64,000 nt of DNA from Nageia nagi (Eukaryota; Plantae; Pinophyta). How positions within the stretch are numbered: the first letter of the stretch is position 1; the number at the start of each line of letters is the position of its first letter. This document shows positions 5,826 to 44,045 of the stretch, in pieces. The DNA lies in NCBI GenBank assembly GCA_050084985.1, contig JBITNC010000001.1:97836001-97900000 (forward strand). The letters run 5' to 3'. Below the pieces are notes generated by a model. The model was not told the origin of the DNA. It did not search any database and saw nothing but the letters and a program-made list of their open reading frames with translations. Position numbers and translations under genes: made by a program.

Positions 5826-5826
<1 letters not shown>

Positions 5827-5857
<31 letters not shown>

Positions 5858-11361: not shown

Positions 11362-11390
11362 TAAGTGGACTCAACTTCTTGCTTTCACCC
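11362..11390 (+). repeat. Outer right TIR of copy A
   Basis: TAAGTGGACTCAACTTCTTGCTTTCACCC, an inverted match to 954-982. Confidence 0.75.
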
Positions 11391-11744
11391 ACTACCTATT
11401 ATATTTTTTGGCAGTTATTTTCCCATCACCTATGAGATTACCACCAAAAGTTCCTTCTCTATGAAAATGGCTATACATTGTTGGTATATGGCACCAAAAA
11501 TCACTTTCTAATTTCCTACAAAGGTAGTTATAAATATCGCTCTATTAACCAATGCAATGGCTGTAACTACCATTGAACCTACCTCATTATTTTTTAAAAC
11601 TGGTGGTGTTAGCCACCTCTTTATGGATATATGGAGGTTTTAAACCATCACATAGTTATCACATTAAAAACACAAATAGAGTGTAGCCTGGAAATATTCT
11701 TCCAAATGGAAATGCTTCCAAACTATGTCATTGTTGGTTACCTA

Positions 11745-13700
<1,956 letters not shown>

Positions 13701-15776: not shown

Positions 15777-16059
15777 ATAATGTAAATGTAAAAATATCAA
15801 ATAAATATAGTACAATACGACTAGATTGGTCCCACTAAAAGTACAAGAGATACATCATTATGTTTGTATCATTATCATACTTATCATAGTATTTTCACAC
15901 AATTCAATGCTTATAATCATGTCAATTATTATAATCATATCATTGTTGTTTATTATTTGCAAGTGCAAAGAGAGCACCAAGTATGTCATTTTTTATAACT
16001 CGAAATGCACAGTAAGTTTTAAGTTCCTAGTGAATCATTATTATCGAAATGCACAAACA

Positions 16060-17029
16060 CTAAGTAGATACATCCATATACCCAATTCAAATTTTATGGA
16101 TATTTTGGTAGTATCTTATCAAGCAATTCTCATGCCTTGTGTATTCTTCCATATTTTGCATACATATAATCTATCAAGGCACTCACAACCACAATATTTA
16201 TTTACAAGTGCTCACCAAGTATCCTACAATCATTATTAACCATGAAACTATGTTTATGTCATGTATCTTAAGAAATATTTCTCGATCCTTTTATATTTTT
16301 CCATATTTTCGATACATATGATTTATTAAGGCACTCACAACCACAACATTCGATTTACAAGCACCAAGTAGATACATCCACACATCCAATTAAATTTTTA
16401 TAGGTATTTTGGTAGTATCTTGTCAAAAAAGTTTTAGGCCTTATGTATTCTTGCATATTTTGTATAAATACAATTTATCAAGGCACTCATAACTATAACA
16501 TTCAATTTACAAATACCAAGTAGATACATACATATACCCAATTCAAATTTTATGGATATTTTGGTAGTATCTTAACAAACAATTCTCATCCCACATTTTG
16601 CATACATGTGATCTATCAAGGCACTCATAACCACGAAATTCAATTACAAGTGCTCACCAAGTAGACACATCCACATATCCAATTCAAGTTTTATAATTCT
16701 ATTAGCAATATATTATCAAATCATTCTTGATCCTTGTGTATTCTTTCATATTTTGCATAAATATGATTTATTATAGCCCTCATAACCATAACATTCAATT
16801 TACAAGCACCAAGTACACACATCCACATACCTAATTCAAGTTTTATGGATATTTTGGTAGTATCTTATCAAACAATTATTTGGCCTTTCCTATTCTTCAA
16901 TATTTTGTATACACGTGATCTATCAGGGAATTAACAACCACAAAATTTAATTTACAATCACCAAGTAAATACATCCACACACCTAATTTAGGTTTTATGG
17001 GTTTATTGGTAGTATCTTGTCAAATAATT
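16060..17029. repeat. ~150-bp tandem satellite-like array (6-7 units), continuing after the LTR at 21613-22700
   Basis: AAGTAGATACATCCAC...TTTTATGGATATTTTGGTAGTATCTT recurs near 16082, 16366, 16518, 16659, 16810 and 16963. Related sequence occurs at 1-125, 12700-13400 and 21620-22700. Confidence 0.9.
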
Positions 17030-20000: not shown

Positions 20001-21612
20001 TTGTATTAGTCTTATGATGTAATATACCTCATTTGTTTTATAGCTATAATATATTAAGGTCCTTTGTAATAAGTTTGAAAAAGCTTTGTCATTATCTTAG
20101 ATGTTGCTAAATGAAATCATGAGATATATTCCATCTTCTTATAATTGATAATTAACTTAGAAATGTTTAATAAGGATTATTTGGTATTTATCTCTTGTTA
20201 TTATACTGAATGATAAATGAAAAATAGACAATTTTGCTTCCTCTTTATGAACAACATTATGATTAATACATGTTTTGGTTAATACTTTGATGAATAGGAG
20301 TAGGGATTAATACTTGTTATTATATGATAAGTAGCGAAAATTGGTCTAAATAGACTCCTAAGAAGTATATGGATTAGGTTATTAATCCTGATAAATCCAA
20401 AATTATCTCAATAACTTACAATCAACTCCAAACTAGAGTTAAGGTTTCAAATGATAATTTGGGATATTTAGGGACCCTTGGATCAAATTGGATACAAATG
20501 GGACCCAATGGGATCATTTGAAATCCTTAGGGATGAATGTAATAATGTAAATAAAATGACGAAGAACATTTTCCAAATAAACTTACATTGTAAAATGATA
20601 AATTAAAAGAATATTCTTCGATGTAAGGACCACTTAGCATCGTATTACTTTTGTAGCAATAATAGCTAGACCTTTCCTCACAACTTACTACTTTACCTAT
20701 GCAAGAGAAATTTTAAAAGTAGATTTATATATGCGATACAATGTGTATGGGATAAATATGAATCATGTGACTTCTTGAGTAAGCCTATAACCAAAACTTC
20801 CAAAGTACACCTTGTAGACAAAGATGAATGGGGCTAAACCCTAGAACTTATCTTGTACCCTCTTCACTATTTGAAAATATTAATTTATGGTTAGTAGGTC
20901 ATGGGTGGTTCTTTTTTTCAACACACTTAATAATAAATTATACTAAATAACCACTCAAGGATATTGTTTAATATCTATGGCTCCCCAAGTTATGGGCATG
21001 AAGATGCTAAACCACATGGTGGACCTAATTGATAATTATGGGTAGGCTACTAACTCATATCCTCTGACAAGTGAGATGGAAATAGCAATAAAAAAAACTA
21101 CTATTACTAGGTGAAAGTAATTAGTAGTCATACCACTTACAATTAACGAATAGAGGTATGATGATTTTTCGATAGGCAATGCTACCCGTTCATATGGAAA
21201 CTTATTTAGGACAAGCTATCTACTGCTATTGGATAGAGATTTATCATCAAGTGATAATGCTAACTTAGTGGAAGTGTGACCTCTTGTGTGTTATGGACCT
21301 TAAGTAAAAAACCACTATGCTATGACCAAAAAGCCTATTGGACACTCAACATGGAATAAGAATGGTGAGGTTATCTTTGAGGCATCTTTTCAATAGGATG
21401 AGTGTTGAAGAGTAAACACTAAAAAATTTTATCAGGGTTGGTTACCTCAAGTTCTTGACCAATCTTTCCATGTGAGTGTTAACTAGCTAGAAACAATATT
21501 AAGCTCATGTGGGATTACCTAGTTCATTCCTAGAATATCAAGTGTTAAATAAATAGAACAATTAGGTCCCAAATTTAGGGTTTTGGTTGGTGAAAATAAG
21601 TGGTGTGTTACA
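17030..21612 (+). mobile_element. Long (~4.6 kb) solo-LTR-like insertion, TSD TAATT
   Basis: It splits one satellite unit, with TAATT at 17025-17029 and 21613-21617. Termini are TATTACAACCC and GGTGTGTTACA. A TATA-like CTATAAATAAAGG lies near 17859. Confidence 0.7.
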
Positions 21613-21844
21613 TAATTTTTGGGCCTTATGTGTTCTTTCATATTTTGCATATATATGATCTATCAAATCACTCACAACCATAACATTTGATTTAGAATCA
21701 ACAAGTAGAGACATCCACACACCCAATTTAGGTTTTATGGATATTTTGATAGTGAAGTTCAAAGCACCCTCATGATAGCATGCATAACCAAGAAGGTCAA
21801 CAATGCATGTATAATTATTCATCCCAAGAATAATGCAATAAGAG

Positions 21845-22345: not shown

Positions 22346-22934
22346 AAGAATCCCTCATGTTGTAAGGGTTTATTATGCATTTTTTATTTTTTCTATCAGG
22401 GCATTCAAAACCACAATATTTAATTTACAAGCATCAAGTAGACACATGTACATTCTCAATTTAGGTTTTATGGGTACTTAACTTTTAGCGATGAAGTCCA
22501 AAGCTCCCTTAGGATTTTACATCTAAGAAGGTTAACAATGCATGTATAATGATTCATCCCAAAAATAATGCAATAAGATTCACTTATGGTGTAAGGGCTT
22601 ATTTTGTATTTTGCATACATATCTATCGGGCTATTCTAAACCACAACACTCAATTTACAAGAACCATGTAGACATGTCCAATTTAGGTTTAATGGGTATT
22701 TTAGCAATGAAGTTCAAAATAATGATCCCCATACAATACATGCACCAAGCAATCATCCTTATACAATGCATGCTCACCAAACAATGGTCCACATGCAATG
22801 CATGTAAAATGATTCATTTCATACCATATGATATACTTAGATCCTATCATTTATTAGTGCATTTATACCATTTGTATAAATATTTATTAACATCATTTGA
22901 AATCTTCATATCATTATTGCACAATAGGAAGATG

Positions 22935-23495: not shown

Positions 23496-24666
23496 TATAA
23501 TTTAAAAATAAAAATTAAAAATTATTAAATGATATTTTAATTTTTTAAATGTATAAAAAATAACAATATTAAAATTTCATAATAAAAAATAAATTATTAA
23601 TAAATTCATACTTTACTAAAGAACATTTAAAATTATCATAATAACATGAAATCATTATTTTAATAAATAAACTCACAACTTAAAAAAGCAATTTTATATA
23701 AAATTAGAATATATATAATTAATAATAAAATTAACCCACATAAAAATATTTACAATTATAATATAGTTGGAGTTGGATAAATATTCAAAATGCATATAGT
23801 CAGCTACTTGTTTAAGGTTAGAAAAAAAAATTGGCTCTCCCAACCCTCTTTTCTCTCATTGTAGTGTTAGGTTTTGGAGTTTGATTTCGGTCAAGTATTG
23901 ATAAAATAGTTTTCTATTTCCTAATCATTTTGTAGATGACCAATCCCAAACTAGGAAAAAGAAAAAGTTGATTTTAGTATTGGCTAAAATTAAGCTTTTT
24001 CTAATTGGAAAAATCAATTTTATGATTGGTTAAAATTAAGTTTTTTTCTAAATGTAAAAGTTAATTTTAGAATTGGCTAAAATTAAGCTTTTTTAATTGT
24101 AAATTTTCTAAGTTTTAACAAGGCATTAAGTGGGGAATGGTTTAACCATAGGATGCTTGTTTTAGCATGTATAGTTAAGGTATTAATATATAAATATGTA
24201 ATTCCTTCATCAGATAGCTCAAGGTTTGTGTCTTCAATATAGATTAAAGAGAGTCTTCCAACCTTTAGGGTATTCAAGCTAGATTGGAGCACGGGCATGG
24301 AAAGAGGAACATTGTAGCAATATTGATTGTAAGTGGATCCCTTTGGTGAAAGAATTAAGTTGGAGAATTTATTATGAATAACCAAAATATTTTTTATTTA
24401 TTGATGTCTCTCAACTAGCATCAATTCATAGGAGATTCTTATTGTATGGATATACTTCTAGGTATAAAGAATTCAAAAGCTCATTTATGGAGCTTGAAGC
24501 TTGGTATAGAGCTTGTATGTAGTGGAGAAGTTATGGTAATATTTCCTTGTATTCAGAGAGGAGGTTGCAACTGTTGTGTTGCATGATTATTTCTTTCAAG
24601 GGTTTGTATTAGTAATAATACAATGATCAAAAACTCTTGGTGGATGTATCCCATATCGAGTGAACC

Positions 24667-27182
24667 TAAAATATTCCATACTAGGGTCAATTCAAAATCA
24701 TGCTAAATGGGATATCTAGAATAGCTAAAAAGCATCAAAATTTGGCTAGTAAATCATTCATGCACCAAAAATCCCTATCCAAGCATCCAAATACAAATGT
24801 ATACCCTCTAGGGGTAGAATTATAAATCCAAAATCCAATATTAGGATCTAGAATGACCCAATTTCCAATTTGAAATGCATAAACTTAATAATTAAGCATG
24901 CATAAATTAAATATCTAATCTCTTAAGATGGAATTCATTCATATAAATGCAATAATGCTTATGTAAGCTAAACATCTAGGCTAAATTGGCATAATAATAA
25001 AATATAGCATCCACAAACTCAAAATCTAGCCCTCTAGGGAAAGATCTCAAAAGATAACACAACAAATGAGCCATAAGATGTAATTATAATAATATTGAAA
25101 TGATAATTGAATTGAATGCCTTATCCTAGAGCAAAGAATGCCCTAACTGAAGATATTTGAGATATTATTATGAATAAAGGAAAAGCACCAAGGTTGTTCC
25201 ACATTAGTTGCAAGGCTTGTACTAGGACTTCCTCCTCCATGAATTCTGGGAAAGATAATAGGTTATCTAATAGTATTAATATAATCTAAGGTAATGCAAA
25301 CACCCCTAAATAGCTTATAGTAAGTACTTGGAGGTGCACTAACCCTCAAAGTAGCGATATGTAAAGCCTTAAAACCTCGCTAAGTTTCAACACCTTCCTT
25401 GTAGGTTTTTGTCCATAAGAGGTAATGGAAGGAGTCGAAACCTACAACATGAAGAAGAGAGAAAAAATTACAAATAAGCATATCCTCAAGTTAGCAATTA
25501 TTCTCCTTTTATAGACTCAATAAGACCCTCCTACCCTACACTAATCTTGGTATGCACAGGATCAAGTCATAGGATCCAAATTCACTCTTGGAGTAAGACA
25601 TCTCATCATGGATGCATTGGGATCCATAAAATCTCATCCAATGGTGTTGGTGTGCTCTCCTAAGTGCAATGTTTACCTATTTATGTCCTCTCTTCCCTTG
25701 TATCAATATCATTATCTTGAATTCATCATGCTCTACCCTAGGGATGTGTCTAACTTTAAGGGGAGAAATATTAGATTCGAGGATTACTAAATGCCTCGAG
25801 ATGCCAAATTACATTCATCAAGGCTAGAAATATGCAACATCTCATTTAACAAGACTAATATTACATTTAAATAAGTATTTACCTTTGTTATTTTAAATAC
25901 AATAATTATTTGTCATCTTTAAGTGGCTCATACAATTAATAAATAAAAATAACAATTAATGACCCATAGAGTCCAACATCCCATGTTGGAGAGCCTTTAA
26001 GTGGATAAATGTAATATCCTAAATGTATCATCACCCCTTTTTAGTACCATTACCCTTCGTCATAGGTTCTACATTTTTTATTCATATTTTGGGTTGTATA
26101 GAGCATCTAGTGCCAAACATTTTGATAGGTTATACAACATGGTTACATCAAGAAATGAGTGAGATATTGTATTTTGAATTTTGCCAGTCAAACCAATCTT
26201 CTACAATCATGCGAGTGCGAATTTACTATATTATCCCATTTAATGGGATTTCTCTATGCTACGTCCCTCTCCTAGGGATATGAGTTAGTAGTTAATTGTA
26301 TCTAGGAGTGATTTATGTAATTAGTAGTCATTATGTACCATTTAATAATAATGAATTATAATGATGTATTAGTGAGATCTTAGGATAGGATATTTATAGG
26401 CCCAAGGGACCAATTGTGTGCCCCAATATGGAACATCTCCCTCCTAGAGATAGTTAGGAGTGTCTATTAGCATTATAGATAATTATTGTGACTATGAGGA
26501 GTGATTATGTGGATCCCAAAGCCAATATATGCTCTAATGGATTAGATGCCTAGCCTTGCATGATCCCTAGGTGAGATCTAGATCTAAGATGAAGCTATAT
26601 AAAGGAGAAGCACATCATTATAAAGGGATATTCAACTTATTTATTCATATTATACTCATATCATGGCATGGAATCATCTATTGGGACTCTTTTTTGATGA
26701 AAACCTAGCAAGGGAAGGGTTTAGTGGGATGCAAACCTTACTAAATCTTGGCTAAGGATGGAAACCCTTAGTCTTATTTGAGTCTTCATCTCAGATCTGG
26801 GTATTGAGACCCAAGCATTGTGACATCATCCTTTATGTCATCTATTACATTATATTTGCTCCATTGATGCTATTTATTGAATAATAGTTCTTGGATCTCA
26901 TACTTTGGCATGTGCTTTGGATATTTTTGTGGTGCAATCTCATAGATCTTGCTCATCTCCTTGTTGATTAATTGGTTAATAATTTGGAATAAAGAATTAG
27001 TTTGGTATATTATAGTAAAAATATATAAAAATTCCCTAACTATTGCTTAAATTTCTAAAATATTTCCAAATTATCATAAAACCATAAAAATACTCCTAAA
27101 TCATTAAGAGAGCACCATGAGGGTGCATGTACCACCTCTTGGTGCCGGAGTGAGTGAGACACCCAAATTTGGGAATATTACA
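24667..27182. mobile_element. Solo-LTR-like insertion in LTR1
   Basis: Absent from LTR2 and LTR3. Termini TAAAATATTCC and GGAATATTACA form an imperfect IR. The TSD GAACC/TGACC is degenerate. Confidence 0.65.
26010..27014 (+). mobile_element. Solo LTR nested within the previous insertion
   Basis: TGTAATATCC...GGTATATTATA termini, TSD ATAAA/GTAAA, and TATA box CTATATAAAGG near 26595. Confidence 0.5.
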
Positions 27183-29949
27183 TGACCATGTTATATCTTG
27201 TATTTCTCTATAATTGCATGGTTACTTTTCTTGATTTAATAAGTTTTCACTTTTATTATGAGAAGGGTTTGCTCTCATGATCTTCTTTTTATAGGCTAGA
27301 TCCTAACAATTGGTATCAAACCATGTTGGAGGATCTCTCAAAAAGAAAGAAGAGTTTCTTTAGTTCTAGTGGGAGCATGACATAAGAAGGAATTTTAAGA
27401 AAGCATGGTGAGCTTGTAACCCACTAATCTCATAATATAGATGGAGGAGGAAGATCAAAAGCAAAGGTACTAGGTGACATGTTACAAGAGGCTTTGATAC
27501 TTTCTTAAGATCATATTGATTTTGAATATAAGGGTGGGTGCAAGAAGTTGAGTCCCACTTTAGAGGAACTAAGTGGGATTTAGTTTTTTTCTAATGTGTA
27601 CCCAAGATCTTGGGTACAAGATCAGGATCCTAAGTAGGCTTGGCATCCCAAGCCTAAATAGGATCCCTAGCCTGACTAGGATTATGAACCCCAAGATCTT
27701 GACCCATGGGATCCTGACCTCTGGGATCTTGATACATGATATCCTAATGCTCAAGATCTAAGGTTGACTTTTAAAATGCTCTAGCTTACTCTTAATTCAT
27801 TTCACAAGACTTCTCACATCACTCCTCCAAAACCATGGTGGCTTCCAAACTTGTAGACCCATGATCCCAGTCCTAGAGGTGTTCATCTACTCTTTAGCTT
27901 GCCCTCGTTGAGACTGCCATCATTCCCCCTTCAAGATATGCTCTTGAATCTCTCATTTGATCTTTTTTTAAGTAAAAACTAGTTTTATATGATACTCTCT
28001 AGGAAATTTTATGTATGGAAATTATTTTTATATTTGTAATTCATTTAATATATTTTATAAATGATATTTCTTGATTCAAGTTTTTTAGAAATAACTCTTG
28101 ATTCTTATCCAAATATCCATTTTAGTTTGGACTCAACATAGTTTTTAGGTTGTTTCCTTCAACTTAAACCCTTTTTATGGTCTCTTTAATTGATAAACAA
28201 TTTAGTAATTACCATGTTTTAAATTTAAATAATACTAAATAAAATTCAAACCACCATTCTTTGGATGAACCAATAACTTGGTATATGATATAAGTAAAAA
28301 TGAAAAGGGTCTTTTTGGTTAAGGTTTTACCATAAAAAGAATGCTCACCAAGTTCTCACTATATAGGATGACATCATGTTGATGTCATGGGATATGTAAC
28401 TAGCCTTCAAAAATCCATGTACAACATACCTTCTTGATCTTCTCATGCATATAAATTTTAATGTCCCACTACACCCTTTTAGCTTCTTATATATTTAGTC
28501 AATCCTCTTTTATTGCTAGTGTGTCTTAAATATCATGTATATTCTTTGTACTAACTCTTAGGTAGTAGCTAAAGGGAATACCAAAATTCATTTCTAGCTT
28601 CTATAATATGATAACATTAGCTAATAGTAGTATTTTGTAGTTTTAAGTGTGAAGTTTATTTTTCTTTTTGTTTGTATAATAATTAATGAAAGATATCTAT
28701 TGATTCTTTGTTAATAATTAATAAAATGCATATATAAAGGATTATAGGGAATAAAGTAGCAAGGTTATAAGGCCATTTTAACCATCCCCATCTAAAGAAA
28801 AAGATGAAGAGTTGGCTCATCAATAAGGGAAGCCCCTAACCTAAAATTTAGGAAGGAAATTGTATTGTAGTCTCTTCTCCAAGGTACCCTAGATTTAGAA
28901 TGCATCCAAGGGAGGAAGTATTGAAAATAAATTCACTCGATATGAGCCCTCCCAAAAAATATTGTTTCACTAAATAACTTGTTATACATATTGAGTATAC
29001 ATGCCACATCACTTTTGTAGGTCTTACTAGATAATTTTTTTAAAACTTTAAAATCTCATAAATTTTGATGGGGTTTCAATTTAATGAATTGTAAGGGGCC
29101 AAAAAGTGTTGGTTAAGGTTTTACCATAAAAGGGATGCACACTAAGTTCTCACTATATAGGATATAATGGGCCCCGTATTCAAAGTGAGGCTAGATAAGA
29201 CACTTTTACATGCATCAAAGCATTTTGTACATGTTTTAGGGTCCTCAAATAAGCACCTAACTGAAGCACTTGTACATCATCTAAATTCTCTTTATACCAA
29301 TAATGATAACTCTTAAAATAAATTTGATAAATATGATGCATTCTCTTGGGATACTTCATTCTTGTCCCCCTATATACTTCAAAGTCTATTGGGATGTACT
29401 CTCTCGATGTGTAAAAACTTATATATATAATTGAATCCACTAGGAAATAAAAGATAAATTTCATAATAAATCTACATTCATATATAACTACACATTCTTG
29501 TTAAAATAAATTCATTACATTGTGAGAAATCATTTTCTTATATCTTATTCAACCAATTCTTGCTAAAGTATTTAGTTAAAAAACTCCAAGCATGAGTTAT
29601 TCAAGTATTGTTAATAGGTTTGAATTAGCAACTTGTATAAGACTCATAATGAGTTTTTTTATTAGATTATTTAATATAGGGGTTTTGAAATGATCCCATA
29701 ACCTTTTTACATTAGTATGAATATTTTCAGTAAGTTCCTATAAACAAAACAACTATACATTGAGTCTTGCAAAGTTGATATTACAAAGTAGATAACAAAT
29801 AAAACATTTACTATTAACCTAAGAGTTGATCATAGGATAGATTCTTTCCTTTCACCTGGGTCCTCCTAGAGATGAGGTTGTAATACTTGCCTTCTATCCT
29901 TTGTTCTTGCAATCATATATAGAATTGAGAAATTCCTCTACATTAAATA

Positions 29950-30950
29950 AGGAAATGTGGGTGTCCACTTGGTCCATGAATTAAGGAGGCCCTCAAAATC
30001 ATCACCAAATTTAGGTAAGCCAATATAGGGGGTCCCAAGGGATATCTTAGAAACCCTCCACATGTAATTGCTCACCTCGCTAGTGGCTTGTCTCAACTTC
30101 CCTTTTATGGTGGAGTGGGATCTGAAAAATTACCTTATTTGATCACACTCCTCTAGATTCCTTTTGATGAGCATGAGCTTGTGCTTTTGCTTGTTTAAGG
30201 TGTCTCACCCTTTGCTTCCTAAGTTATTTTAATCTTCACCTTATTCACTCTTCCTTCAACATAAAAGGATGGTAGAGAATCCTTTGATGGGAGAAGAAAA
30301 TATGCATCATCCTTTGCATCCTCATCCTTCAAGATACCTTCCTATTTTGTAGAATTAAAAGAATAAACACAATCCATACCCAATTAGATATTGAATGTGT
30401 TTTTATTAGAAGTGATAAATTCCCTAATGCCTAGGACCAACAAACTTGCCCTCCTTCATCTCTTAAATAATATTTTAAATGGAGTGAAATAAGTAATGGG
30501 TAATATTAATTTCTCTCACCCCCTTGCAAAAAAATTCAAAAATACCAACTGAAAATCATGAATTGTATTATAATTATGGCCATCTTCCATTTGATTGGTA
30601 AGGAATAATAATTTATGCCCCTTTGAAGCTTTTAAAATTTGTCATTCTTTCCTTTCAAAAGTTGTAGCTCTTGGGTGAATGAGTACTTCTCCCTTATAAT
30701 TTTGTCCCCATTTAGAGGAAAGATTGAAACTTTGTACTAAAGCATGGGGTTGATGTAAAATGATATTCATTAGCCTATACTCTTCCCTCATCCCATGGGA
30801 GCACTAAAGCAAGAGTCAAATTTTGGTCTATCACTTAAAATCAATCGAGATTTAGACTAATCACCTTGCTTGTGATAAAATATCCTTACTATCATTGCAT
30901 GCCATAATAACCTTGAGCTCTAATCAATAATGAAAAGAGTAATGAAATGT
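29950..30950 (-). mobile_element. Highly decayed L1-like LINE remnant inside copy B
   Basis: Weak reverse-strand peptides (DKIIREKY; ..RLMNIILHQPHAL) recall the plant L1 ORF2 C-terminal region. Absent from copy A. Confidence 0.3.
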
Positions 30951-31985
30951 GAGATCTTGGACTCATGAAAACATATATGATAAAGCCTTAAGAATGTACA
31001 AAGGATAAACTACCTAGGAAGATGGACACACCAAGTTAAAGAAACATCTACCACAACTATTAACCTTGCAAATTACATGGGTATGGATTCAATGAGTATG
31101 AGTATGATAAAAACTAAACCACTATAAAATCAACCCATATGCAAATTGAATAAAAAAAGATAGCAATACATTAATATCCACATGAAAAACTTATGTTACG
31201 ATGAAAAACATACATCACATCATCCAACCCCTTATGCATAGGTTTGAATACTAATATTGAATGATCAATAAAACATGACTCAAACATACAAAATTTGTCT
31301 TAGTTCAAAAATTTTCTAAAGTCAAAGCATCCTTAATTAATTTGTCTTAGTTCACATTTCTTTCAAAAAACATATAAAATATTATATTAAATCAAATTTT
31401 TTTATTTTCTCTCAAGCTACTACTAGAATAAATTTGACTATCTTGATATAATGAGAGTTTATTTGACATTTTATAACAAACCTAAAAGGAAATTATGGAG
31501 ATCATTAGTTTAAGGGCATTTTTTAATGATACATTAAGGGGAAGGCCAAACTAGCATAACTTTGAGTTTTACATATTCTTATACATTGAGTTCTAACCAT
31601 GAAAAAATCTTAATTTCTGCATACTTACTAAGGTGATTCATTTATTTCTAGAGTATTTGATTCCATAATTTATTTCCATTTTCCTTAATAATTAAAGCAT
31701 ATCATTTTGACTTGAATACCATGAGATGCTTTATTAAAGAAGTATTTCCATACTACATTTGAAAAGGAGTCTTGTTATGGAGATTTATGAACATTAAATT
31801 TTCATGTATATCAAGTTATTATGATGCATGTTAAATATTCTTTAAATTATTTATATTAACCTTTATGTTTGATATATATTGAACTTGAGTTGTATATCAA
31901 GTTAGGACTTATATATTTAGATCTCTTTAAATTTAATGTAGTTATATTTTACTCTTCTAAAATTGTTAATTCATGCAGGTGGTCC

Positions 31986-32021
<36 letters not shown>

Positions 32022-33750
32022 TCCACCTCTTGCCCATGAGCTTGATCAAGAACCCCCATTACCCGAGGATGCTTGCTTATGAGAAACTATAGTTGAGAAT
32101 ATCACCTCTATTCAAGGTAGGATTCATGAGATACTACAACATAGGGAAATCCCCCCTCACTTATCATGGCTTGCAACTTTAATGCAAATTGTAGTTGATA
32201 TAGTTACTTCCATAGATCAGACCATAGGTGATTTCTAGTCATATAGAGAAGAGAGGAGGAGGTTTTATAGTGATGGCCTATCCCAGAGATAGATTTATGA
32301 GACTTATCACATTACAAAAGATGATTTAGATTTATTTTTTAGGAATCCTAGAACTGGAGAACCAATGGCACCCACCCAAAAGAGAATTTCTATTTTTTGG
32401 TGTAGGCATGAGGAGATCACTACATATTTTTGGGATCAATGGTGGATGGTCTTTGATCATCCACCACATAGTGGTGGCAATGATGTACACTTTTATTTCA
32501 TCAAGTTTTTATGGTTAGAGTTTGTTATTGGGAAAAATCCCAATTATTTTGATATTCATGAGTTTGATGGTGTTGGTATGGGTAGTTTACAACAAAGGCT
32601 AGGGGCATGACTTGATCCTAGATTACCTACTCATGTTATACCTCTTGTTAGTCCACTTAGAGAGACTATACTTGCACATGTACATCATATAGCCATAGTT
32701 TCAACCCTTGTATCATTGAGTCAGCTTACAAGGAACCTCATTGAACAAGCTACCAATATGGAAGTTGAGTTCACTAAGGTTAGAGGTGATGGATCAGGAC
32801 CTAGTGGAGTGGGAGGGACTAGCAACTCTCTTGGAATATCTGCACTCCATAGATGTAGTACTTTTCATGTGATATGTCATGGATCATGCACACCATCATA
32901 TTTAAGAGGATTTATGCATATGTTATTTGTTGATACTAAGCATGAGGTATATAGGCATAGATGTGCATCTTTGGGTGATCGAGGTGACCAGCATATTGAT
33001 TCCTTTGGCATACATATATAGGAGATAACTTTTGACCCATCCATGGTATGTATATTATAATTTTTAAACAAGTTCACATGTATACATATTTAATGAAATC
33101 ATAAAATTTTAATAAAATTTGAATGAAAGTTTATAAATTATATGTACTTGTAGGTTGACCATGACAATTTTATGATTTAGGATATTTTTGTTGATACTGC
33201 TTTTACTAGCGAGGCACATGGCTCACATGTGCAGTCTACAGTGGTTGATCCTTCAACCTCTCAGCATCCATTCACAGTAATTTGTAATTTATTTTTATGA
33301 TTATGTTTTTGTTATATCTAGACGTGGTTATAAATTTAAGTAATGATTTAGTTTAACTTTTTTACTTGTTTCTTTTGTTTTCTTATAGAGCTTGATTGAT
33401 ACCATTTTTTCTCATGAGGTCCACAACTCATAAGAGTGACCTACAGTGATTGTGGGCACTTCATTTTCTCATGATGTCATTCACAACTCAATAGGGTGGA
33501 CTACAATGGTTGACCCTGCAATCTCTAAGCATGATACCATGGTAATTTATAATGCATTTTAAAACATGTCTAGTGTAGTACATACATTTCATATGATTTT
33601 TAAGCTATAATGTATGATTAAGTTGAACTAACTCTAAGTTTAATACTTGTTTTGTATAGCATGAGATAGGTACTCATGATACATAACGTGGAACGAAGAG
33701 GAGTCTAGATTATGACCCTTCACCTAGTCAAGACTAGTTCAGATAGATAG
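32022..33750 (+). pseudogene. Second transposon gene (ORF2), unknown function, copy B; one large and three small exons
   Basis: A single frame runs from about 32022 to 33045 (~340 codons; ORFs 32365 and 32716 are co-frame), broken only by TAG/TGA codons explicable as C>T. Donor ATG|GTATGT. Further AG/GT-bounded exons at about 33154-33276, 33389-33541 and 33660-33750. Confidence 0.8.
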
Positions 33751-34219
33751 ATAGATAGATATCTATAGGTGGATGGATTTATAGATTTCCATTTTTATTT
33801 TTTGATAATACATTTGGACTAGTTCATGGACTATACATGTATATTCTTATTATTTTGATGTACTCTAGTACATGTTATCGAGTGCATGTGTTTACATGCC
33901 CACTTTCCATATTAGAACTGATATACATGTATGATTTATGTTTTGATCTACATTGATGGATGTTTATGGATTGATATATGTACATGCATTTATATACCTT
34001 GATATATATGTTGATAGATTGATGCATGCCTAGTGAACTCTAGCTCATATATGTTTAATAATTTATGGATGAGATTCAAATTTATGTTTTTGTTTGTATT
34101 TATCTATAATTAAAGGTGGATCTAGATGATGTACATTGGAATGTATATGCTTTGAATATGGATGTAATTAATAGACTTTTTCATTAAAAAAAATACTTAA
34201 ATAACCTTAATATAATATA

Positions 34220-35450
34220 CAACAATAAGGTCAATAATTGGTGCAAAGAAATAAGGTTAATAATTGTTACAAAGAAATAAGGTCAATAATTGTCAATGCA
34301 AAGAAATAAGTTAGAGAAATTTAGTAAACTCTATCAACATTGAAGGTCCACAACAAAAAACTAATAACCTAAATGGTGAACTCCTAAACCGATAAACATC
34401 AAATCCTTTGCTATCTTCTACCAAGTCAAGAACCATATATGGAAAAATAAATAATGATTTTCATATAGTAAAAGAATGTAATAAATAAATGTGTACAACT
34501 TAGGAAATATTTATCAACAAACTCATCCATAAATAAAAACTAAAATTAGAGGATACTCCATCTCAATAAGTCAACAAGGTATCTACTAAGACCTTACAAA
34601 TAACTTACCATTTATTAATTTGACTTTGTAAGCATATATATGATCAACAATAAGTTCAATAATTATCAATGCAAAGAAATAAGTAAGAGAAATTTAGTAT
34701 TTAACCCTATCAACATTGAAGGTCCTCAAAAAAAAGCTAATAACCTTTGGTGAACTCCTAAAGTGATCTAAACATCAAATCCTTTGCTACCTTCTACCAA
34801 CTCAAGAACCATATGGAAAATTATCACTCTTAGAATTTGAAGTAAATAAATTTAAGACCATTAATCTAAGTCTCCATAAGATTAATTAAAGAACAATTAA
34901 ATCCTAATATAATCAACCTTACTAGATCATTTCTAAGTTAAAGTGTACTTTTAGAATCTTAGAAATCATTAAGAATTGAAACAATGATAACCTTAACCTG
35001 CTAGTCAAAAATTATAAAAGATCCTGGAATTCATAGATTAATTCTCTCATGGTTTTTAAAGGAATGTATGAATATTCAAATATTCAATGATTTTCATATA
35101 GTAAAAGGATGTAACAAATAAATGTGTACAACTTAGGAAATATTTATCAACAAACTCATCCATAAATAAAAAATAAAATTAGAGGGTACTCCATCTCAAC
35201 AAATTAATAAGGTATCTACCAAGACCTTACAAATAACTTACCATTTATTAATTTGAGTTTTTAAGCATATCCATAATCAACAATAAGGTCAATAAATTTT
35301 GTCAATGCAAAGAAATAAGTCAGAGAAATAAGTCAAAGAAATTTAGTATCTAACCCTATCAACATTAAAGGTCCTCAACAAAAAGATATAATAACCTTCT
35401 GTTTTCAAATCCTAAAGTGATCTAAACATTAAATCCTTTGCTATCTAAAC
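34220..35450. repeat. Direct-repeat spacer between the convergent genes of copy B
   Basis: AAT(T)..CAATGCAAAGAAATAAG...CTATCAACATT...AAATCCTTTGCTA blocks occur near 34285, 34655 and 35290. Segment 34455-34650 repeats at 35085-35285. Confidence 0.85.
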
Positions 35451-35621
35451 ATCAAGAGACACTTTTCAATTATTCTTGAAATAATGATGTACTTGTGCAA
35501 GTCCTCTCCTTATATCTATCAACAAAACATGCAAGGGAATGTGAGTAAAATATATATAACATATTTGTATTTAATTTAGAAAATTCAAATAATTATTATT
35601 AAATAAGATTAACTTTATTTT

Positions 35622-38600
35622 TCAATCCATTCTACCATCTACATCCTCTCATTTTTGAAATGCATTTATAATCATCTCATGGTCATCTGACGAAAGGGTC
35701 CACAACATTCTATTATAAGGCTTCCCTTTTATATGAATAGTTTGATATATGTTGCCAAATCAAATGCGAGTAATGTGTAATATTATTATCTACTTCATAA
35801 TCTTCAAATGCAAGCAAACCAGTTAATTACTTAGTAAGATATTTTCATAGCCATATGCCAACAACCACCATAAAACCTATTGGATATAACCATGATTTAT
35901 CCATCATTATCAAAATTTGGAAAAGATGACAAATATTCTAAAGAAATATCTAGAGAATAGATAATAAGCTCACTTGAAAAACATAAATATACATTATACA
36001 AACCTATTGGATAAAGAAATCCATCATTATCACATCGAGGTTGAGTTAACTTATGTTTTTTCTGAACACATCGAGCTAGCCAATACCCTATTCTCTCTTC
36101 ATTCCCTTCAGGTGCAACAATGGCATACACATGTCTTGTAACAAAATTTATATCAATTTAAAGTGTGAACAATGTATTTTAACTAACATAATTCATAAAT
36201 ATTAAAATATGTGTACATTTTCAAGAATATAAATCAATTGAATTTAAAAAAATTACCTTCTTGTACAAGGTATGAAATACGATCATAGTCTTCTAATACA
36301 AATAGTTCATCTTCAACTATTTTTTCTTGTTGATCATCATAGGATTGTGAAAGTGTCAGAGATATTTATTTCCATTCCTCAATCCATTCACATGATTCTG
36401 AATCACCTACAATACAAGTCTCACAAAAGCATGCAAGATCCCTTGTCCATATAGTCCAAGTGCTTGCTTTTGAAATCCTACATGAATGCCACTTTGTTGA
36501 TCTACTGATTGTATCACAATCAAGAAAATTCAAAATATTATCTTCTTCAAATAACCAAAAGTATTGTTGAATTCTCACTTTATCATGTAAATAATGTTGT
36601 ACTACACCATTCCATAATATAACAAACATATTTAGATTTACCTACATCACCAAATTTTAGTTGCTCTCTAGTAAGAGCTCTTTTAACACATGCACCTGCT
36701 CCATCATGTTCTCCTTTACCATGTCCTACTTCAATAAAACTCCATATATGTTCAATATTTTTTCTTTATGAACCCTACTTAGCCAATAAAACATTCTTGA
36801 ATTTTTAAACTATCCCATACAATTATATGACCATATGAATTATTTTTCCATCTGAATTCCTCTTTCATCCCAATTATTGTAAAATATCTTAAAATAATAT
36901 TGGACAAACTCTGATGAGTGTCATTGATTATCACTTATATAAAAATGGTACTCTGTCAAAACATTTATATTATCTTCAGTACTATCATCTACATGTCTAT
37001 ATACAATATGGATAAAAATGGCAACTTGAACTAAATTATAATATTGAGACTAAATTTCTTCTTGTGGTTTAAGAGTATAATTTTCAGCAAATTCAACAAC
37101 TGATAATATAGTTCCAACCAAAAATGTGTTTCTACATTGACAAAATTGATTATCAAGCCATTTAGCATGTTGCAGTATTTCACATATTTTGGTAGATCTA
37201 TCTTAAAATCATTCATGAATGTATGCACTCTGATGCTTTCACTGACCAAATCAACACTTTTTCTAGGTTTTCCATCTTTCAAATTATACTCAGCATTCTT
37301 GAATATTCTAATATTCACATCTTGTTGTCCAAATTCATGCGTATTAATTTCATGCATACAATCTCCTAGTAATAAAATGTTTTGACATCTATCACATTGT
37401 CTTGTAATACATACATGCATTTGAATAAAATAATTTCTCATGAGGAGGTGGACAAAGCAAACTTTCTATAAACTCCTTGATGGATTCATGTGATATATGA
37501 ATACTGCATTCTTGCCTCAAATCATTAGTATGCAACTTCCCACATATGTTTTGAAAAGCATCATAATAATATCGAAACTGCATATGATTTTTGCAACAAC
37601 ATGTTACTCTTTCCTTTGTTAATTCTAACATACCAATGTTTGTATTTCTCAAATGATCTTTGACTTATTTCAATACTAAATGGTTGTAACACTCCCTCTT
37701 CCATAAATTGTTGATACAATTTAGTTTGAGTCATATCTAGTAGGTGTTTTGGATGAGATTCATGATCTTTTGACCCAGGTTTTAATTTCAAAACATCTCT
37801 AGAATGTGGTGACACCCTTGTTCTATCATGCCAAAAAATTTCAATTATAGCCTTGATCTCGCTAGTCAATTTCATATTAGACCTTGGGAGTCTACCACTA
37901 TAACTCCAACATTGGTTGATTGGATCACCTTCAATACTTTGTCTTCTCTTTATAGCCCTTTGCATAGTTTTATGACACATCAAATAATTCACTAACCTTT
38001 CTTTTATTTGAGGTTGTTTGGCTTATTAAAGAAGTTGCTATAGCTTAGTGTGCTGCATTCTTATCTTTAGATCTACTCTTTTTTATAATAGAACTAATAT
38101 CACTAGCAATAGTAGACACAACTTGTTTAAGGGATTCATCTTCCTTGTTTGATTTCACATTAACTTCTAAGGTTTTCATTACCTTTCTCATTTTTTTCAT
38201 TCTCATTAATTGCATCATGAGTTGACATTGAACTTCTAAATCTTTATCTTTGAAGTATTCCTCATGTATATTACTTGAAATGGTTCTTATATATCTTTGA
38301 GATAAAAGCTTATCTTCAAGAAACTTATATAAGATATTACCTTCCATTTTCAAAAAAAAATTATCATCTTTCGAAGATGGATATGAAGACATACCCGATG
38401 GATTCATTTCGAGAGGTGGATTGGTAGATATACCCGATGGATTTGTATCAACAAGTGGATCTGAGGCTTCTCTAATCACAGTCTTATCTTCCACATGTGC
38501 ATCATCTACATTCATTTCTTGAATGTTCTCCTCCTCAATGTTCTCTTGAATGTTCTCCTCTAGAGCATTTGTTGTAGAACTTGATGCTTATGCATCCCTC

Positions 38601-38718
38601 AATTGCCTCAAATGTGCTCTTCTCTCTCTTTTTTGTTGTGCATCCCTCTCTCTATATGCTTGTTCTTGTTTAGGTGTAAACCTCCTCGAACATTTCCTTA
38701 ACATTTTTTTGATCCCAT
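35622..38718 (-). pseudogene. Sola2-type DDD transposase pseudogene (copy B)
   Basis: Motifs TCCCKNHMQF, CDRC, V[D>E]FAENYTLKPQEEI, WS[D>Y]NCMG*FKN, HIWSFIEVGHGKGEHDGAGACVKRAL and RDLACFCETC. Short 3' exons (YAIVAPEGNEERIGYWLARC...). ORF-track fragments span 35897-38830. Confidence 0.88.
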
Positions 38719-40470
38719 GACCTCCTTTCAAAATTAGCCTTGCTTCAAAATTATTGTAATTGCAAAAAATGAATGAAAAATCATAAAAAGAAGAGAAAAT
38801 TACATATTTAATTTGCACAAGTCCATACAATATTGATGGATGTAATTAAAAAATAAAATAAAATACTTTTATATAGATATTTTATTAATAATAGGTCAAC
38901 ATCCCAAGGGTCGACATCCCGACCCACGGGATCCTAACCCCCTCAGGATCCCAGTCTTCAACTTTAAATTTTCACCCACCCTTTTCCCTTGCTCCTAGGC
39001 TCAAAAATAGCTTTAGTGACCCACCCCATTGCTTTGGACCTGCAACTTCAAGGTCCTAACAATGGCAATGGACTTTGCCAACTTTGGGAATGCATTTGAT
39101 GAGGTTTTTCAAAGAATTTTTCATAAAATTTTGAAGAATCATAAATGAGAGTGTAGATTTCAAATATGCTCTTTGTTTTACATTTGGACTAGATTTAGTA
39201 TTTTTAATAGAATTTGCAATGAAAGAGGGTCCATAAACTTCGAAAAGTAGGGTTTCGTAATTGTTTAATATCTTTTTATTTTTTATGAATTATGAAAAAA
39301 AATTGTATGTCCACATTCTACATACAATTCTCTACAACTTAAAAAGAAAAAAGAAAAAGAAAAAACGATAGGTTTAGCTCAATTTATGCTTGAGGGACAC
39401 AAGTACTTTTAGAAATGACAAATAGGGCCAATAAAAAATTAATAAAAAAATTACAAAAAAATATCCTCCACAATCTTTAGTGTCTTAGGTATCAATATCT
39501 AAAAGGATTTAGCAAAATATTAAAATTTATGTCCAATTATGCATGAGGGACACGATGGGGGTATAGTCCTCAAAGTGAATTTTTTAAAGAGTGGGTTTTG
39601 AACATGTCTTTCAAAAATTTATTTCTATTATATGGGTATTGGATTAAATTATATATTTGAAAATTAGATTTCGAATGTTACATTTTTATCCAAGTGATAT
39701 TTTTCATGATTTGGACTCCAAGTGCTTCAAATTTTGAGATTAATTGTGACAAAACATGAAAATCAAGGAAATTAGTTCCACTTTTTGGCCAAAAGTGGGA
39801 CTTAACTTCTTGCACTTACCCATAAAGGAGGACATGTTCATTATCACTCTTTTGAGGATCATTCAATATTGTTGGCATAGGCAACTTTGTTTAAGATTGC
39901 ATTCAAAATTTTGGATGGTTATGGATATGTAGGAAGAAGATAGTTGGTCACTTCTCTTTTTCTATCTCATCTACAGTTTTGAATGTAGCTTGGATTAGAA
40001 ACAAGGTTTCCAATGTATTGTTATTAATTGTTGAAGATCAAAGATTGGAAAGCAGTGGGAGAAATGCATAAAAAGTAATTGTGAGAGCTAGACATGTCCA
40101 GGAGGATGGACATGGCATATATCATGTTGGATGATTACAATATGGATCACATAATGCAATTGTGGTAAGTTGCACTATGTGTGAGCATGCTATGTGGACA
40201 TACATAGTATGTGGATCTTGTCAAGAATGGTGATGGTGTAATCATCATGATGCATAGGCAATCGTGAAGATGTTGAAATATCACAATTATGTGGTAGGTA
40301 AGATTGTGTGTTGCTTGTTGATCACAAGAAATGTGTGTGGATGACAATGATGGTTCAAAGCATGAATACAACAATTTGGGGGAGTTGGCATTCCTTGTTT
40401 GGTTGAAAAGTTATCTTCAACAAATGCAACAACAGTGGAGTTGTTGTGGATCAGTCTCCAAGTGGGAGAT

Positions 40471-41398
40471 TGTTAGGTTTTGGAGTCTAATTTTGACCAA
40501 GTATTGATAAAATAGTTCTCTATTTCCTAATCAGTTTGTAAATGATTGATCCCAAACTAGAGGTGGAAAAAAAGTTAGTTTAGGATTGGCTAAAATTAAG
40601 CTTTGTCTAATTGGAAAAGTTAATTTTAAGATTGGCTAGAATTAAGTTTTTTTATAATTGTAAAAGTTAATTTTAAAATTGGCTAAAATTAAGCTTTTCT
40701 AGTTGTAAACTTTCTAAGTTTGAACTAGGCCTTAAGTGGGGTTTGGGTTAATTATAGGATGCTTGTTTTAGCATGTATGGTTAGGGTTTTGATCTATGAC
40801 TATGTAAGTCATCCATTAAAGAGTTCAAGTTATGAGTTTTCAATGTAGATCAGAGAAAAGCTTAGAGCCTTAAGGAGATTCAAATTAGATTGGAGCAAGG
40901 GCATGGAAAGAGGAAGATCACAATGATATTAACTATAGGTGGTTCCCTTTGCTGCAAGGATTGAGTTAGAGAATTCATTATGAAGAATCAAAAGAATTCT
41001 TATTTATTGGTATCTCTCAACTAGCATCAAGTCATAGGAGATTCTTTTTGTAAGGGTTCTTGGATATACTTCTAGGTAGATAAAACTCGAAAGCTCGTTT
41101 ATGGAGCTTGAAGCTTTCGTATAGAGCTTGTATGCAGTGGAGAAGTGGTAAGATTTCTTTGTATTCGAAGAGGAGGTTACAACTGTTGTGTTGCATGATT
41201 ATTATCTTCAAGGGTTTGTATTGGTAATAATACAAAGATCAAAAAATCTTGGTGGATGTAGCACACATCAGGTGAACCATGTTATATATTGTATTTCTCT
41301 ATACTTGCAAGGTTTATTCTATTGATCTAATAAGTTTTCCCTTTATTATTAGAAGGGTTTACTCTCATGGTCTTCTTTTTGAAGGCTATATCCTAACA
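40471..41398 (+). repeat. LTR2 (928 bp)
   Basis: TGTTAGG...CCTAACA, with the purine tract before and the PBS after. Confidence 0.93.
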
Positions 41399-41400
41399 AT

Positions 41401-41412
41401 TGGTATCAGAGC
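41401..41412 (+). other. Primer-binding site (initiator Met tRNA) TGGTATCAGAGC
   Basis: Canonical plant PBS, 2 nt after the LTR end. Confidence 0.9.
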
Positions 41413-42268
41413 ATGTTAGAGAATCTCTCAAAAAGAAAGAAGGGTTTCTTTAGTTCTAGTGGGAGCATGATAGAAGAAGGAATTTTAAGAAAGCATGGTG
41501 GGCTCATAACCCATTGATCTCATAATAGAGATGGAGGAGGAGGATCAAAAGCAAAGGTACCAGGTGACATGTTACAAGAGGCTTTGATACTTTTTGAAGA
41601 TTGTATTGCTTTTGACTACAAAGGAGGACATGATTATTGTCACTCTTTAGAGGATCATGCAAGATTGTTGGCATAGGCAACTTGGTTTAAGATTGCATTC
41701 AGAATTTTGGAAGGTTGTGGATATGTAGTAAGAAGATAGTTGGCCAATTCTCTTGTTCTATCACTTCTACGGTTTTAAATGTAGCTTGGATTAGAAAGAT
41801 GGTTTCCAATGTATTGTTCTTGACTGTCGAAGAATGAAGATTGGCGAGCAGTGAGAGCAATTAATAAAAAGTAGTTGTGACAGCTAAACATGTCCAGGAG
41901 GATGGGCATGGTATAGATCATGTTGCATGATTATGAGATGGATCAAATAATGCAATTGTGGTAAGTTGCATTATGTGTGAGCATGCTATGTGGACAAGCA
42001 TAGTATGTGGATCTTGTCAAGAATAGTAATGGTGTAATCATCATGATGCATGGGTGATCGTGAAGATGTTGAAATATCACAATTATATGGTAGGTAAGAT
42101 TGTGTGTTGCTTGTTAATCACAAGAAAAGTGTGTGGATGACACGATGGTGGTTCAAAGCATGGATACAACAATTTGGAGGAGTTGGCATTCCTTGTTTGG
42201 TTGAAGAGTTTTCTTCAACAGATGTAACAACGATGGAGTTGTTGTGGATCAATCTCCAAGTGGGAGAT

Positions 42269-43196
42269 TGTTAGGTTTTGCTAATTTCGACCAAGTATTG
42301 ATAAAATAGTTCTTCGTTTCCTAATCGGTTTGTAGATGATTGATCCCAAACTAGGAGTGGAAAAAAAGTTAATTTTAGGATTGGCTACAATTAAGCCTTT
42401 TCTAATTGGTAAAGTTAATTTTAAGATTGGGTAGAATTAAGTTTTTTTATAATTGTAAAAGTTAATTTTAGAATTGGCTAAAATTAAGTTTTTTCTATTT
42501 GTAAACTTTCTAAGTTTGAACTAGGCCTTAAGTGGGGATTGGGTTAATTATAGGATGCTTGTTTTAGCATGTATAGTTAGGGTTTTGATCTATAAGTATG
42601 TAATTCCTCCATTAAAGAGGTCAAATTATGAGTTTTCAATGTAGATCAAAGAGAGGCTTCGAGCCTCAAGGAGCTTCAAAGTAGATTGGAGCAAGGGCAT
42701 AGAAAGAGGAAGATCACAACAATATTTATTGTAGGTGGATCCCTTTGGTGCAAGGATTGAGTTGGACAATTCATTGTGAAGAATCAAAAGAATTCTTATT
42801 TATGGGTGTCTCTCAACTAGCATCAAGATATAGGAGATTCTTTTTTGTAAGGGTTCTTGGATAGACTTCTAGGTAGAAAGAACTCGAAAGCTTCTTTATG
42901 GAGCTTGAAGCTTTGGTATAGAGCTTGCATGCAATGGAGAAGTCGTGGTAAGATTTCTTTGTATTTGAATAGGAGGTTGCAACTGTTGTGTTGCATGATT
43001 GTTCCTTTCAAGGGTTTGTATTGGTAATAATACAAAGATCAAAAAATCTTGGTAGATGTAGCACACATCAAGTGAACCACGTTACATATTGTATTTCTCT
43101 ATACTTGCATGGTTTCTTCTATTGATCTAATAAGTTTTCGCTTTTATTATTAGAAAGGTTTGCTCTCAATATCTTTTTATAGGCTATATTGTAACA
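42269..43196 (+). repeat. LTR3 (928 bp)
   Basis: Direct repeat of LTR2, followed by the TSD TGTAG. Confidence 0.93.
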
Positions 43197-44045
43197 TGTA
43201 GAATACCTTTTGACATAAGAAAATTACATTGAAATAATAAAAGTAATACTACATAACTAAACAAGTAAAATAAGAGCATATTTTAAATGTCTTCTAGAAC
43301 ACAAATTTTATCTTAATAATAAAGACTGAACACTAACTTAACAATAATGTTATTTTTGCATTTAGAATTCCAACTCGTGCCATTTGATGTATCATCTCAT
43401 TGTGAAGTAATTTGACATATTGTGTACATAGCTTATTATATTGTCAACCAATTGTCCTAGCAAAATACACTATATCTGAGAATTTTCAAAACCACCTTTC
43501 AAATAAATGCTTTCACTTTCAATACTCTCCAACAGATGTTAAAAAAACAAAAATTAAAAACAAAAAAATATATCAATTACCATTAATGCTTAGAATGATA
43601 ATTACTTGCAAAACCTACCCACAAAAAGTGGATAGTAATGATTATTATTTGCAAGCTAACCTTGTTATGTTTTACATTTTCATGTAAAAGTCCTAAAACA
43701 ATCTTATAAAAGTTGAAGTGGCATATGGTGCCAACTGCCAAACCTTCCATCCAAAATTAAGATGTATAGTACCACTAGACCATTAATACATTGGACCAGT
43801 AACTTTGAGATTATTGATCATGACATAATTTGCAATTAGTAAGAAAAACAAAATATTTCTCTATACATGAAAGTTATAATAAAAATTTGATTGAATAAAA
43901 AATTAAAATTACAACAAAAATCAAATTCATACTTCTAGACTATAGAAGTACTTTGACTGCATCAAAGAATAAGGATGTTTTCTGCATTTCCTATATCCTG
44001 AAAGACTCTCGATGTCTGCATGCCCTTTGAAACATGTATAAAGCT

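Follow-up and report, generated by a model that had tools for sequence, protein, structure and literature searches.

A Sola2-type DNA transposon family with a second, convergent open reading frame in Nageia nagi

To which superfamily does the large transposon at this locus of Nageia nagi belong, and is the second open reading frame (ORF2) lying opposite its transposase a genuine gene of the element? The window, i.e. the whole stretch of 64,000 nucleotides that we analyzed (assembly GCA_050084985.1, contig JBITNC010000001.1, positions 97,836,001 to 97,900,000 of the forward strand), contains an element of 12,290 bp, referred to here as copy B, together with a diverged relative, copy A. An earlier reading made from the sequence alone had described copy B as a plant Sola2-like transposon with two convergent genes. 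We regard it as quite probable that copies A and B are long-dead transposons of the autonomous Sola2 type, whose lineage carried ORF2 as a second gene converging on the transposase gene. Direct observation covers the ends, the 4-bp duplication as compared with an empty site, and the transposase with its homology, colinearity and decay. The superfamily itself is an ordinary one, and the orphan convergent ORF2 makes the family a modest new variant. The features of copy B and of its insertion site are the following (positions in the window; a strand is given for features that have one):

27532-39821: copy B, Sola2-type transposon, 12,290 bp
27528-27531: left copy of the target site duplication (TSD), ATAA; in the paralogous empty site these 4 bp occur once, as ACAA
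27532-27561, plus strand: left terminal inverted repeat (TIR), GGGTGGGTGCAAGAAGTTGAGTCCCACTTT
27590-27760: subterminal palindromic cluster of GGATCC, GGGATCYTG and CCAAGATCTTGG, next to the left end
27990-31845: left internal region without a convincing open frame
about 31942-33018, plus strand: ORF2, a decayed frame of about 350 codons, mainly one exon, converging on the transposase
33019-34217: conserved block downstream of ORF2, common to copies A and C (a third copy, described below) and repeated in other genomes
34276-35446: spacer between the two 3' ends, with copy-specific direct repeats
35650-38704, minus strand: Sola2-type transposase pseudogene, putative ATG at 38704, stop at 35652-35650
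38890-38960: second cluster of GGATCC-type motifs (GGATCC, GGGATCYTG and CCAAGATCTTGG), about 190 bp upstream of the transposase start
39792-39821, minus strand: right TIR
39822-39825: right copy of the TSD, ATAA
41323-41921: paralogous empty site in a neighboring unit of an array of repeats of about 1.8 kb

The boundaries of copy B are well defined. Comparing GGGTGGGTGCAAGAAGTTGAGTCCCACTTT with the reverse complement of 39792-39821, the two TIRs agree at 27 of 30 bases. The family end is GGGTRRGTGCAAGAAGTT. A degenerate 30-mer of the end of copy B has, with at most 3 mismatches, three matches in the window, in comparison to none in 100 shuffled sequences. The GGG...CCC repeats of about 30 bp that had been proposed from the sequence are therefore real. 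All four ends in the window and 10 metagenome loci begin with GGGT. Directly inside the left TIR lies a hairpin (CCCACTT...AAGTGGG), and an internal hairpin is present at each end of copy B. Apart from the two clusters at 27590-27760 and 38890-38960, GGATCC-type motifs are rare in copy B. These clusters may be binding sites of the transposase.

Both ends are flanked by ATAA, the exact 4-bp TSD noted before. When the flanks of copy B are rejoined with one ATAA, they are colinear with 41323-41921 over 600 bp at 88%. Reading this junction base by base against the empty site we found no gap and equal lengths on either side, so that the target duplication of copy B is exactly 4 bp. It is thus proven by a paralogous empty site. 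Copy B sits in one unit of the local array of repeats of about 1.8 kb, which occupies 23962-27531 and 39826-43200 with a spacing of 1796-1800 bp. At the start of every unit lies a minisatellite of 47 bp (23971-24103, 40570-40709 and 42365-42505).

Between the ends several stretches lie beside the two reading frames. The left internal region (about 3.9 kb) is missing from copy A and is 87-91% identical on the metagenome contigs L005 and L009; since it recurs there, it is family sequence and not a private insertion. The block at 33019-34217 contains an internal direct repeat of about 275 bp. The spacer is rich in repeats, as had been seen in the first reading: 34276-34449 is repeated at 34649-34823 and 34445-34792 at 35078-35446, with a spacing of about 373 and 633 bp, respectively. 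No Rfam match was obtained anywhere in the window.

The transposase was analyzed in both copies in the window. Copy A comprises the following parts:

954-11276, minus strand: copy A, 10.3 kb, inverted in relation to copy B, with both inverted ends
about 2560-5527, plus strand: transposase remnant of copy A
about 8155-9124, minus strand: ORF2 remnant of copy A

In copy B the transposase gene is interrupted by at least six frameshifts and several stops. Its 3' part contains GT..AG introns at 36256-36139 and 36002-35877 and a third one near 35833-35803, and the exons flanking these introns extend the alignment to an intron-free transcript protein from Klebsormidium. The pieces from the window are colinear with intact full-length relatives from liverworts, mosses, Klebsormidium, corals and bivalves. 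The alignment passes from a basic N-terminus through a conserved N-terminal block, CCC-H, C..C..CG, three aspartate motifs and LSCxCxxC to a C-terminal domain. The intact relatives retain all three aspartates (DFxEN, SDxC/WSDG and HGKGxxDG), whereas the copies in the window are damaged. The first motif reads EFAENY in copy B (D to E) and YFAENY in copy A (D to Y), so that DFAENY, as given in the sequence-only reading, is not found literally. The second motif, given there as SDNC.G.FKN, exists in this form only in copy A (SDNCMG*FKN), and has changed to SYNCMG*FKN in copy B (D to Y), with an in-frame stop in both. The third motif, HGKGEHDGAG, is present in copy B at 36723 as stated. Both transposase copies are dead pseudogenes with numerous frameshifts and stops and damaged catalytic aspartates. 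The stop within CMG*FKN affects the same codon in the two copies, being TAG in copy B (36810-36812) and TAA in copy A (4412-4414). Either an ancestor that was itself defective passed this stop on, or a C-to-T change happened twice.

A stop-free piece of 78 residues from copy A (4089-4322) was searched with HMMER against 1.84 billion representative sequences and gave 171 hits with E≤1e-3, 33 of them with E≤1e-10. Named matches come from the liverworts Calypogeia fissa and Riccia sorocarpa, the moss Ceratodon purpureus, a Klebsormidium transcript and the coral Pocillopora. A word-index search with an alignment of the family (A1), which was dominated by the first sequence of that alignment, returned bivalve-type relatives only and did not reach the dictyostelid Sola2 proteins. 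There was no meaningful Pfam match for 10 pieces of the transposase, and none for eight intact relatives. The AlphaFold model of one of these relatives (P0153) predicts an RNase H-like core in the order b1-b2-b3-a-b4-a-b5-a with a predicted local distance difference test score (pLDDT) of 80-90. The best structural matches of this model are retroviral integrase cores and the transposases Metnase, Mos1, IstA and Sleeping Beauty, with Z of 6.5-8.1 and aligned lengths of 140-178 residues. We consider these scores middling, but the matches agree with each other. Foldseek found no match of the transposase model in the PDB at E≤1e-3, and searches of PDB sequences gave nothing significant.

The Sola2 transposons have termini that follow the rule 5'-GRG...CYC-3', with which the GGG...CCC ends agree; the published element Sola2_DFa-2 begins with GAG (PMC3627910). 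Sola is a superfamily without a Pfam model (PMC5751038), so the lack of any Pfam match fits Sola. At the same time it excludes hAT, MULE, CACTA, PIF, Tc1/mariner, piggyBac, P and Merlin, superfamilies for which Pfam models exist. The motifs and their spacing were compared by eye with the two sequences printed in supplement 3 of PMC3627910, which Bao and Jurka had named Sola2. Sola2_DFa-2 and Sola2_PPa-1 carry MDFKEN / CDFKEN, FSDVLNH, FWSDGAKHFKS / FWCDNARHFKS, and YHGKSDVD / YHGKSECD (PMC3627910). By inspection, the motifs of the Nageia family are spaced by 54 (D1 to SD), 39 (SD to D2) and 44 residues (D2 to D3) in comparison to 51, 38 and 45 in these named Sola2 transposases.

Could the element nevertheless belong to another superfamily with short duplications, such as Kolobok, Academ or PIF/Harbinger? 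It counts in favor of this possibility, and against our assignment, that the link to Sola2 is a match by eye to two printed sequences and not a computed alignment or tree with curated reference transposases, and that the structural matches are generic RNase H-like enzymes. The agreement of the motif series and spacing with named Sola2 transposases speaks for Sola2 instead. In addition the intact relatives contain no PIF, hAT, MULE, CACTA or Tc1 domain of Pfam, THAP or helicase parts were not seen, and Sola-2 has independently been annotated as abundant in conifers (PMC11539532). PIF/Harbinger was rejected individually because the duplication is 4 bp and not the 3-bp TWA, and because neither DDE_Tnp_4 nor Myb is found in the pieces from the window or in the intact relatives. 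MuDR/MULE was likewise rejected: a MULE domain is absent, the duplication is 4 bp instead of 9-11 bp and the TIRs measure 30 bp instead of being long and carrying the promoters of both genes, leaving only the convergent layout as a similarity. We therefore judge an origin outside Sola2 to be highly unlikely. The assignment to Sola2, as already made in the sequence-only reading, is supported by the 4-bp AT-rich duplication, the GGG...CCC ends, the lack of a Pfam family, the predicted RNase H-like core and the motif series with its spacing.

Having placed the element in Sola2, we compared its organization between copies. Copy A is 70-84% identical to copy B and shows the same order of parts, as had been recognized at first sight. 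The shared blocks are about 450 bp of the left end, the ORF2 block (31846-34217 in copy B, about 80%) and the transposase block (35452-39821 in copy B, 70-84%). The flanks of copy A are ATTG and CTAA and thus do not form a matching target duplication, which is a point against the transposon reading for this copy. A further family end, AAGTGGACTCAACTTCTTGCTTTCACCC, lies at 11362-11391, 86-115 bp past the right end of copy A, so that the right border of copy A is composite. This composite border may explain the absent duplication.

A third copy, copy C, is found on the metagenome contigs L002 and L007. It begins with the left end at 3727, followed by a nested derivative at 7163-8310, ORF2 at 8425-10435, a spacer and the transposase 3' end from 12594 onward, with ORF2 and transposase convergent as in copies A and B. 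The nested derivative (L002:7163-8310, identical in L007:5662-6809) is non-autonomous and comprises 1,148 bp, with 58 bp taken from the left end, about 855 bp from the right end, and both TIRs present; it is flanked by TTTT and TTTC and located just upstream of ORF2. A rearranged member of the family was also observed at L001:2264-3292 (equal to L008 reversed), in which 640 bp of the right end are fused in inverted orientation to the transposase 3' region (35757-36162 in copy B); it is devoid of the remainder of the transposase.

We further mapped contigs of four other organisms onto 31800-37799 (80% likeness). Thousands of contigs cover each of the two blocks, ORF2 and transposase, which shows that the family is present in high copy number, and the spacer (34200-35400) is almost uncovered. 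In two of the four organisms a deletion junction from 32777 to 37413 was found, corresponding to a derivative that joins ORF2 to the transposase. The family also occurs in air metagenomes, which would fit wind-borne pollen. Taking together copies A, B and C and the deletion derivative in two other organisms, the convergent two-gene layout is a real trait of the lineage.

The reality of the layout leads to the question of whether ORF2 encodes a protein. In copy B the start region of ORF2 is broken by a (TA)n microsatellite at 31982-32027. An in-frame start, ATGGATCC, is kept in copies A and C and has been overwritten in copy B by the expansion of (TA)n. The first reading had described ORF2 as an intron-containing gene opposed to the transposase. 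The opposite orientation and convergence stood up to analysis, the intron in the core did not: copy A is uninterrupted where copy B is frameshifted, so the core of ORF2 is one exon and no intron is needed, and the clear introns are those in the transposase 3' part.

The frame in question (coordinate mod 3 = 1) contains 4, 1 and 7 stops per 200 codons along 32032-33000, in comparison to 9-26 stops per 200 codons in other frames and other parts of the element. That such a stretch is open by chance within repeat DNA might be suspected from the missing homologues, the low-confidence structure model (see below) and the odd sequence, which is unusually rich in tryptophan and histidine. We consider this explanation very improbable for three reasons. 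The best window of 242 codons contains a single stop, whereas 300 Markov simulations gave at least 4 and on average 8.9, and the non-genic parts of the element have 9. Second, the composition at codon positions parallels that of the transposase: G at position 1 has a frequency of 0.28 in ORF2 and 0.25 in the transposase (background 0.13-0.16), and C at position 3 a frequency of 0.11 and 0.06, respectively (background 0.13-0.16), with T at position 3 reaching 0.46 in ORF2. Third, the same frame is readable in copies A, B and C, in identical position and orientation. ORF2 thus seems to have been an intact coding frame while the lineage was amplified, and it is now broken in every copy seen.

Several results weigh against ORF2 as a second gene of the element. 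No Pfam hit was obtained at E≤1 for nine pieces from copies A and B. A word-index search with two pieces against 5.8 billion proteins, filtered for length, found no homologue of comparable length, and comparison of the pieces with PDB sequences gave no significant match. In the ESM Atlas one piece led to phage look-alikes annotated as "hypothetical protein" with few shared features and the other piece to none; given the low count of shared features we dismissed the phage look-alikes as noise. AlphaFold gave no confident fold for the N-terminal piece (pLDDT 38). Tests of codon positions and of the ratio of nonsynonymous to synonymous changes (dN/dS) among copies A, B and C did not reveal frame-specific constraint on ORF2, but the same holds for the true transposase frame, so that these tests have no power here. 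Finally, contig depth in other genomes is seemingly lower in the ORF2 region than in the transposase; contig depth is a poor measure, and many copies may be without ORF2.

The behavior of the transposase explains why the tests are blind. The fewest differences in its frame fall on third codon positions, and stops have arisen from C-to-T changes (CAG to TAG, CGA to TGA, CAA to TAA). The low divergence of third positions is likely due to their content of about 80% A/T, with C-to-T and G-to-A changes dominating the decay. As the true transposase frame shows this same pattern, the copies differ by neutral decay after insertion. It follows that the recurrence of ORF2 in copy A reflects common descent and not function.

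For this reason we also weighed whether ORF2 is a passenger, i.e. a fragment of a host gene or a piece of another mobile element without a role in transposition, comparable to the cargo of Pack-MULEs or CACTA elements. The lack of a selection signal in any pairwise comparison and of relatives among transposon or other proteins would be expected of a passenger. The interval between the left end and ORF2 varies among copy A, copies B and D, and copy C, marking this side as prone to rearrangement, and the lower contig depth at ORF2 points in the same direction. On the other hand, three copies with 20-28% divergence still have the frame of about 350 codons in a nearly open state and with a composition of the coding type, its place and convergent orientation are fixed in all three of them, and the length-filtered search did not match any host protein of comparable length. 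We regard a passenger as possible but doubtful. Overall, ORF2 is in our view likely to be a real protein encoded by the element.

The way in which such an element would have moved can be outlined from what is common to the family. A three-aspartate (DDD) transposase, about 900 residues long and built around an RNase H-like core, would recognize the 30-bp GGG...CCC ends and probably also the subterminal GGATCC-type motifs. Cut-and-paste transposition into AT-rich targets with a 4-bp staggered cut would then give rise to the 4-bp duplication, a picture that the proven duplication of copy B supports. By analogy to MuDR, CACTA and PIF, ORF2 could be an accessory protein borne by the element that binds, for example, the ends or the transposase. 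A stronger version, in which gymnosperm Sola2 elements depend on ORF2 as a lineage-specific accessory protein, either to transpose or to escape silencing, appears rather unlikely to us.

Two further features of the window lie apart from the transposon. At 16053-17029 we noticed a satellite-like array unrelated to the Sola2 element, with a unit of 152 bp in 6.5 copies and higher-order periods of 293 and 445; relatives of this satellite are located near 12580-13720, 21600-21780 and 22370-22700. An open frame with reverse-transcriptase-like sequence at 55128-56086 on the minus strand, in a stretch richer in G and C (52000-58000), is by its sequence probably a remnant of a long interspersed nuclear element.

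To our knowledge Sola2 is among the least studied cut-and-paste superfamilies, with no solved structure and no element active in the laboratory. In some conifer genomes it nonetheless makes up a major part of the class II elements. Our analysis contributes the anatomy of a gymnosperm Sola2 family, comprising its ends, the 4-bp duplication, the subterminal motifs, an intron-bearing transposase and an orphan second gene. Since both copies in the window are fossils, the immediate value lies in annotation rather than in mechanism. If younger intact copies exist, they would offer a route to the first active plant Sola2 system and to the role of the second protein. If ORF2 were indeed required, Sola2 would be a further superfamily with an independent two-component system, after Mutator, CACTA and PIF, and such a protein might help to explain the rank of Sola2 as the most successful group of DNA transposons in some conifers.

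How does the family compare with known systems? With the Sola2 group of the Sola superfamily (Bao et al. 2009, cited after PMC3627910, PMC4455052 and PMC9804982) the Nageia family shares the 4-bp AT-rich duplication, GRG ends and a large three-aspartate RNase H-like transposase without a Pfam model, whose motifs DFxEN, WSDxxxxFK and HGKxxxD agree in order and spacing with those of Sola2_DFa-2 and Sola2_PPa-1. It differs in the orphan convergent reading frame, in its length of 10-12 kb, in its intron-bearing genes and in that the copies are dead.

The sequence-only reading had taken Sola2 to be mainly a single-gene element of animals and protists, a framing that makes the family look more novel than it is. 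Sola-2 abounds in conifers, and two dictyostelids, Dictyostelium fasciculatum and Polysphondylium pallidum, are the published source of Sola2-Fanzor1 chimeras with lengths of 10-15 kb and 4-bp AT-rich duplications (PMC3627910). Like the Nageia family, the chimeras have a second protein gene beside the transposase and 4-bp AT-rich duplications. Their second gene codes for a nuclease of the TnpB/Fanzor kind with 1000-1800 residues, whereas ORF2 comprises about 350 codons. ORF2 as a TnpB/Fanzor protein was rejected on account of this length and because no Pfam model matched, including the zinc-ribbon models of TnpB.

Outside Sola2, MuDR of maize (mudrA/mudrB) combines a transposase gene with a second gene in convergent orientation and a short region between the 3' ends, and its second protein MURB binds the N-terminus of MURA (PMC12973397). 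The pairs TnpA/TnpD of CACTA and ORF1/transposase of PIF also consist of a transposase and a second gene borne by the element. All three belong to other superfamilies without sequence similarity to the Nageia element, and unlike in MuDR, ORF2 starts 2-4.5 kb inside the element and not at its end. The parallel to mudrA/mudrB that had been suggested concerns the convergent layout, and a role of ORF2 in transposition is hypothetical.

Among plants, Sola has been listed since 2009 (PMC9804982, PMC6839031); it is one of eight DNA transposon superfamilies of plants and has been described as absent from the angiosperms analyzed (PMC9804982; also PMC6839031). In a survey of 2025 covering 1,007 plant genomes, a few Sola clusters with recent activity were detected (PMC12973397). 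From the proposal of a plant Sola2 lineage with an accessory gene, the two-gene convergent layout therefore remains, and the plant lineage itself is not new. A second reading frame in plant Sola2 elements was not found to be described in the searchable literature, a scope to which Repbase and Dfam do not belong. In the Cupressaceae, DNA/Sola-2 makes up 56.7 Mb (0.6%) of the genome of Cryptomeria japonica (PMC11539532), and Sola2 ranks first in abundance among the class II superfamilies of Cupressus sempervirens (bioRxiv 10.64898/2026.07.23.736688). In the parts of these reports available to us the elements appear as RepeatMasker totals only, with no element structure, ends, duplications or second reading frame described, in contrast to the family presented here. 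The superfamily label, the gymnosperm host and the abundance are the same: the Nageia family is likewise a high-copy family, and it is so in several organisms.

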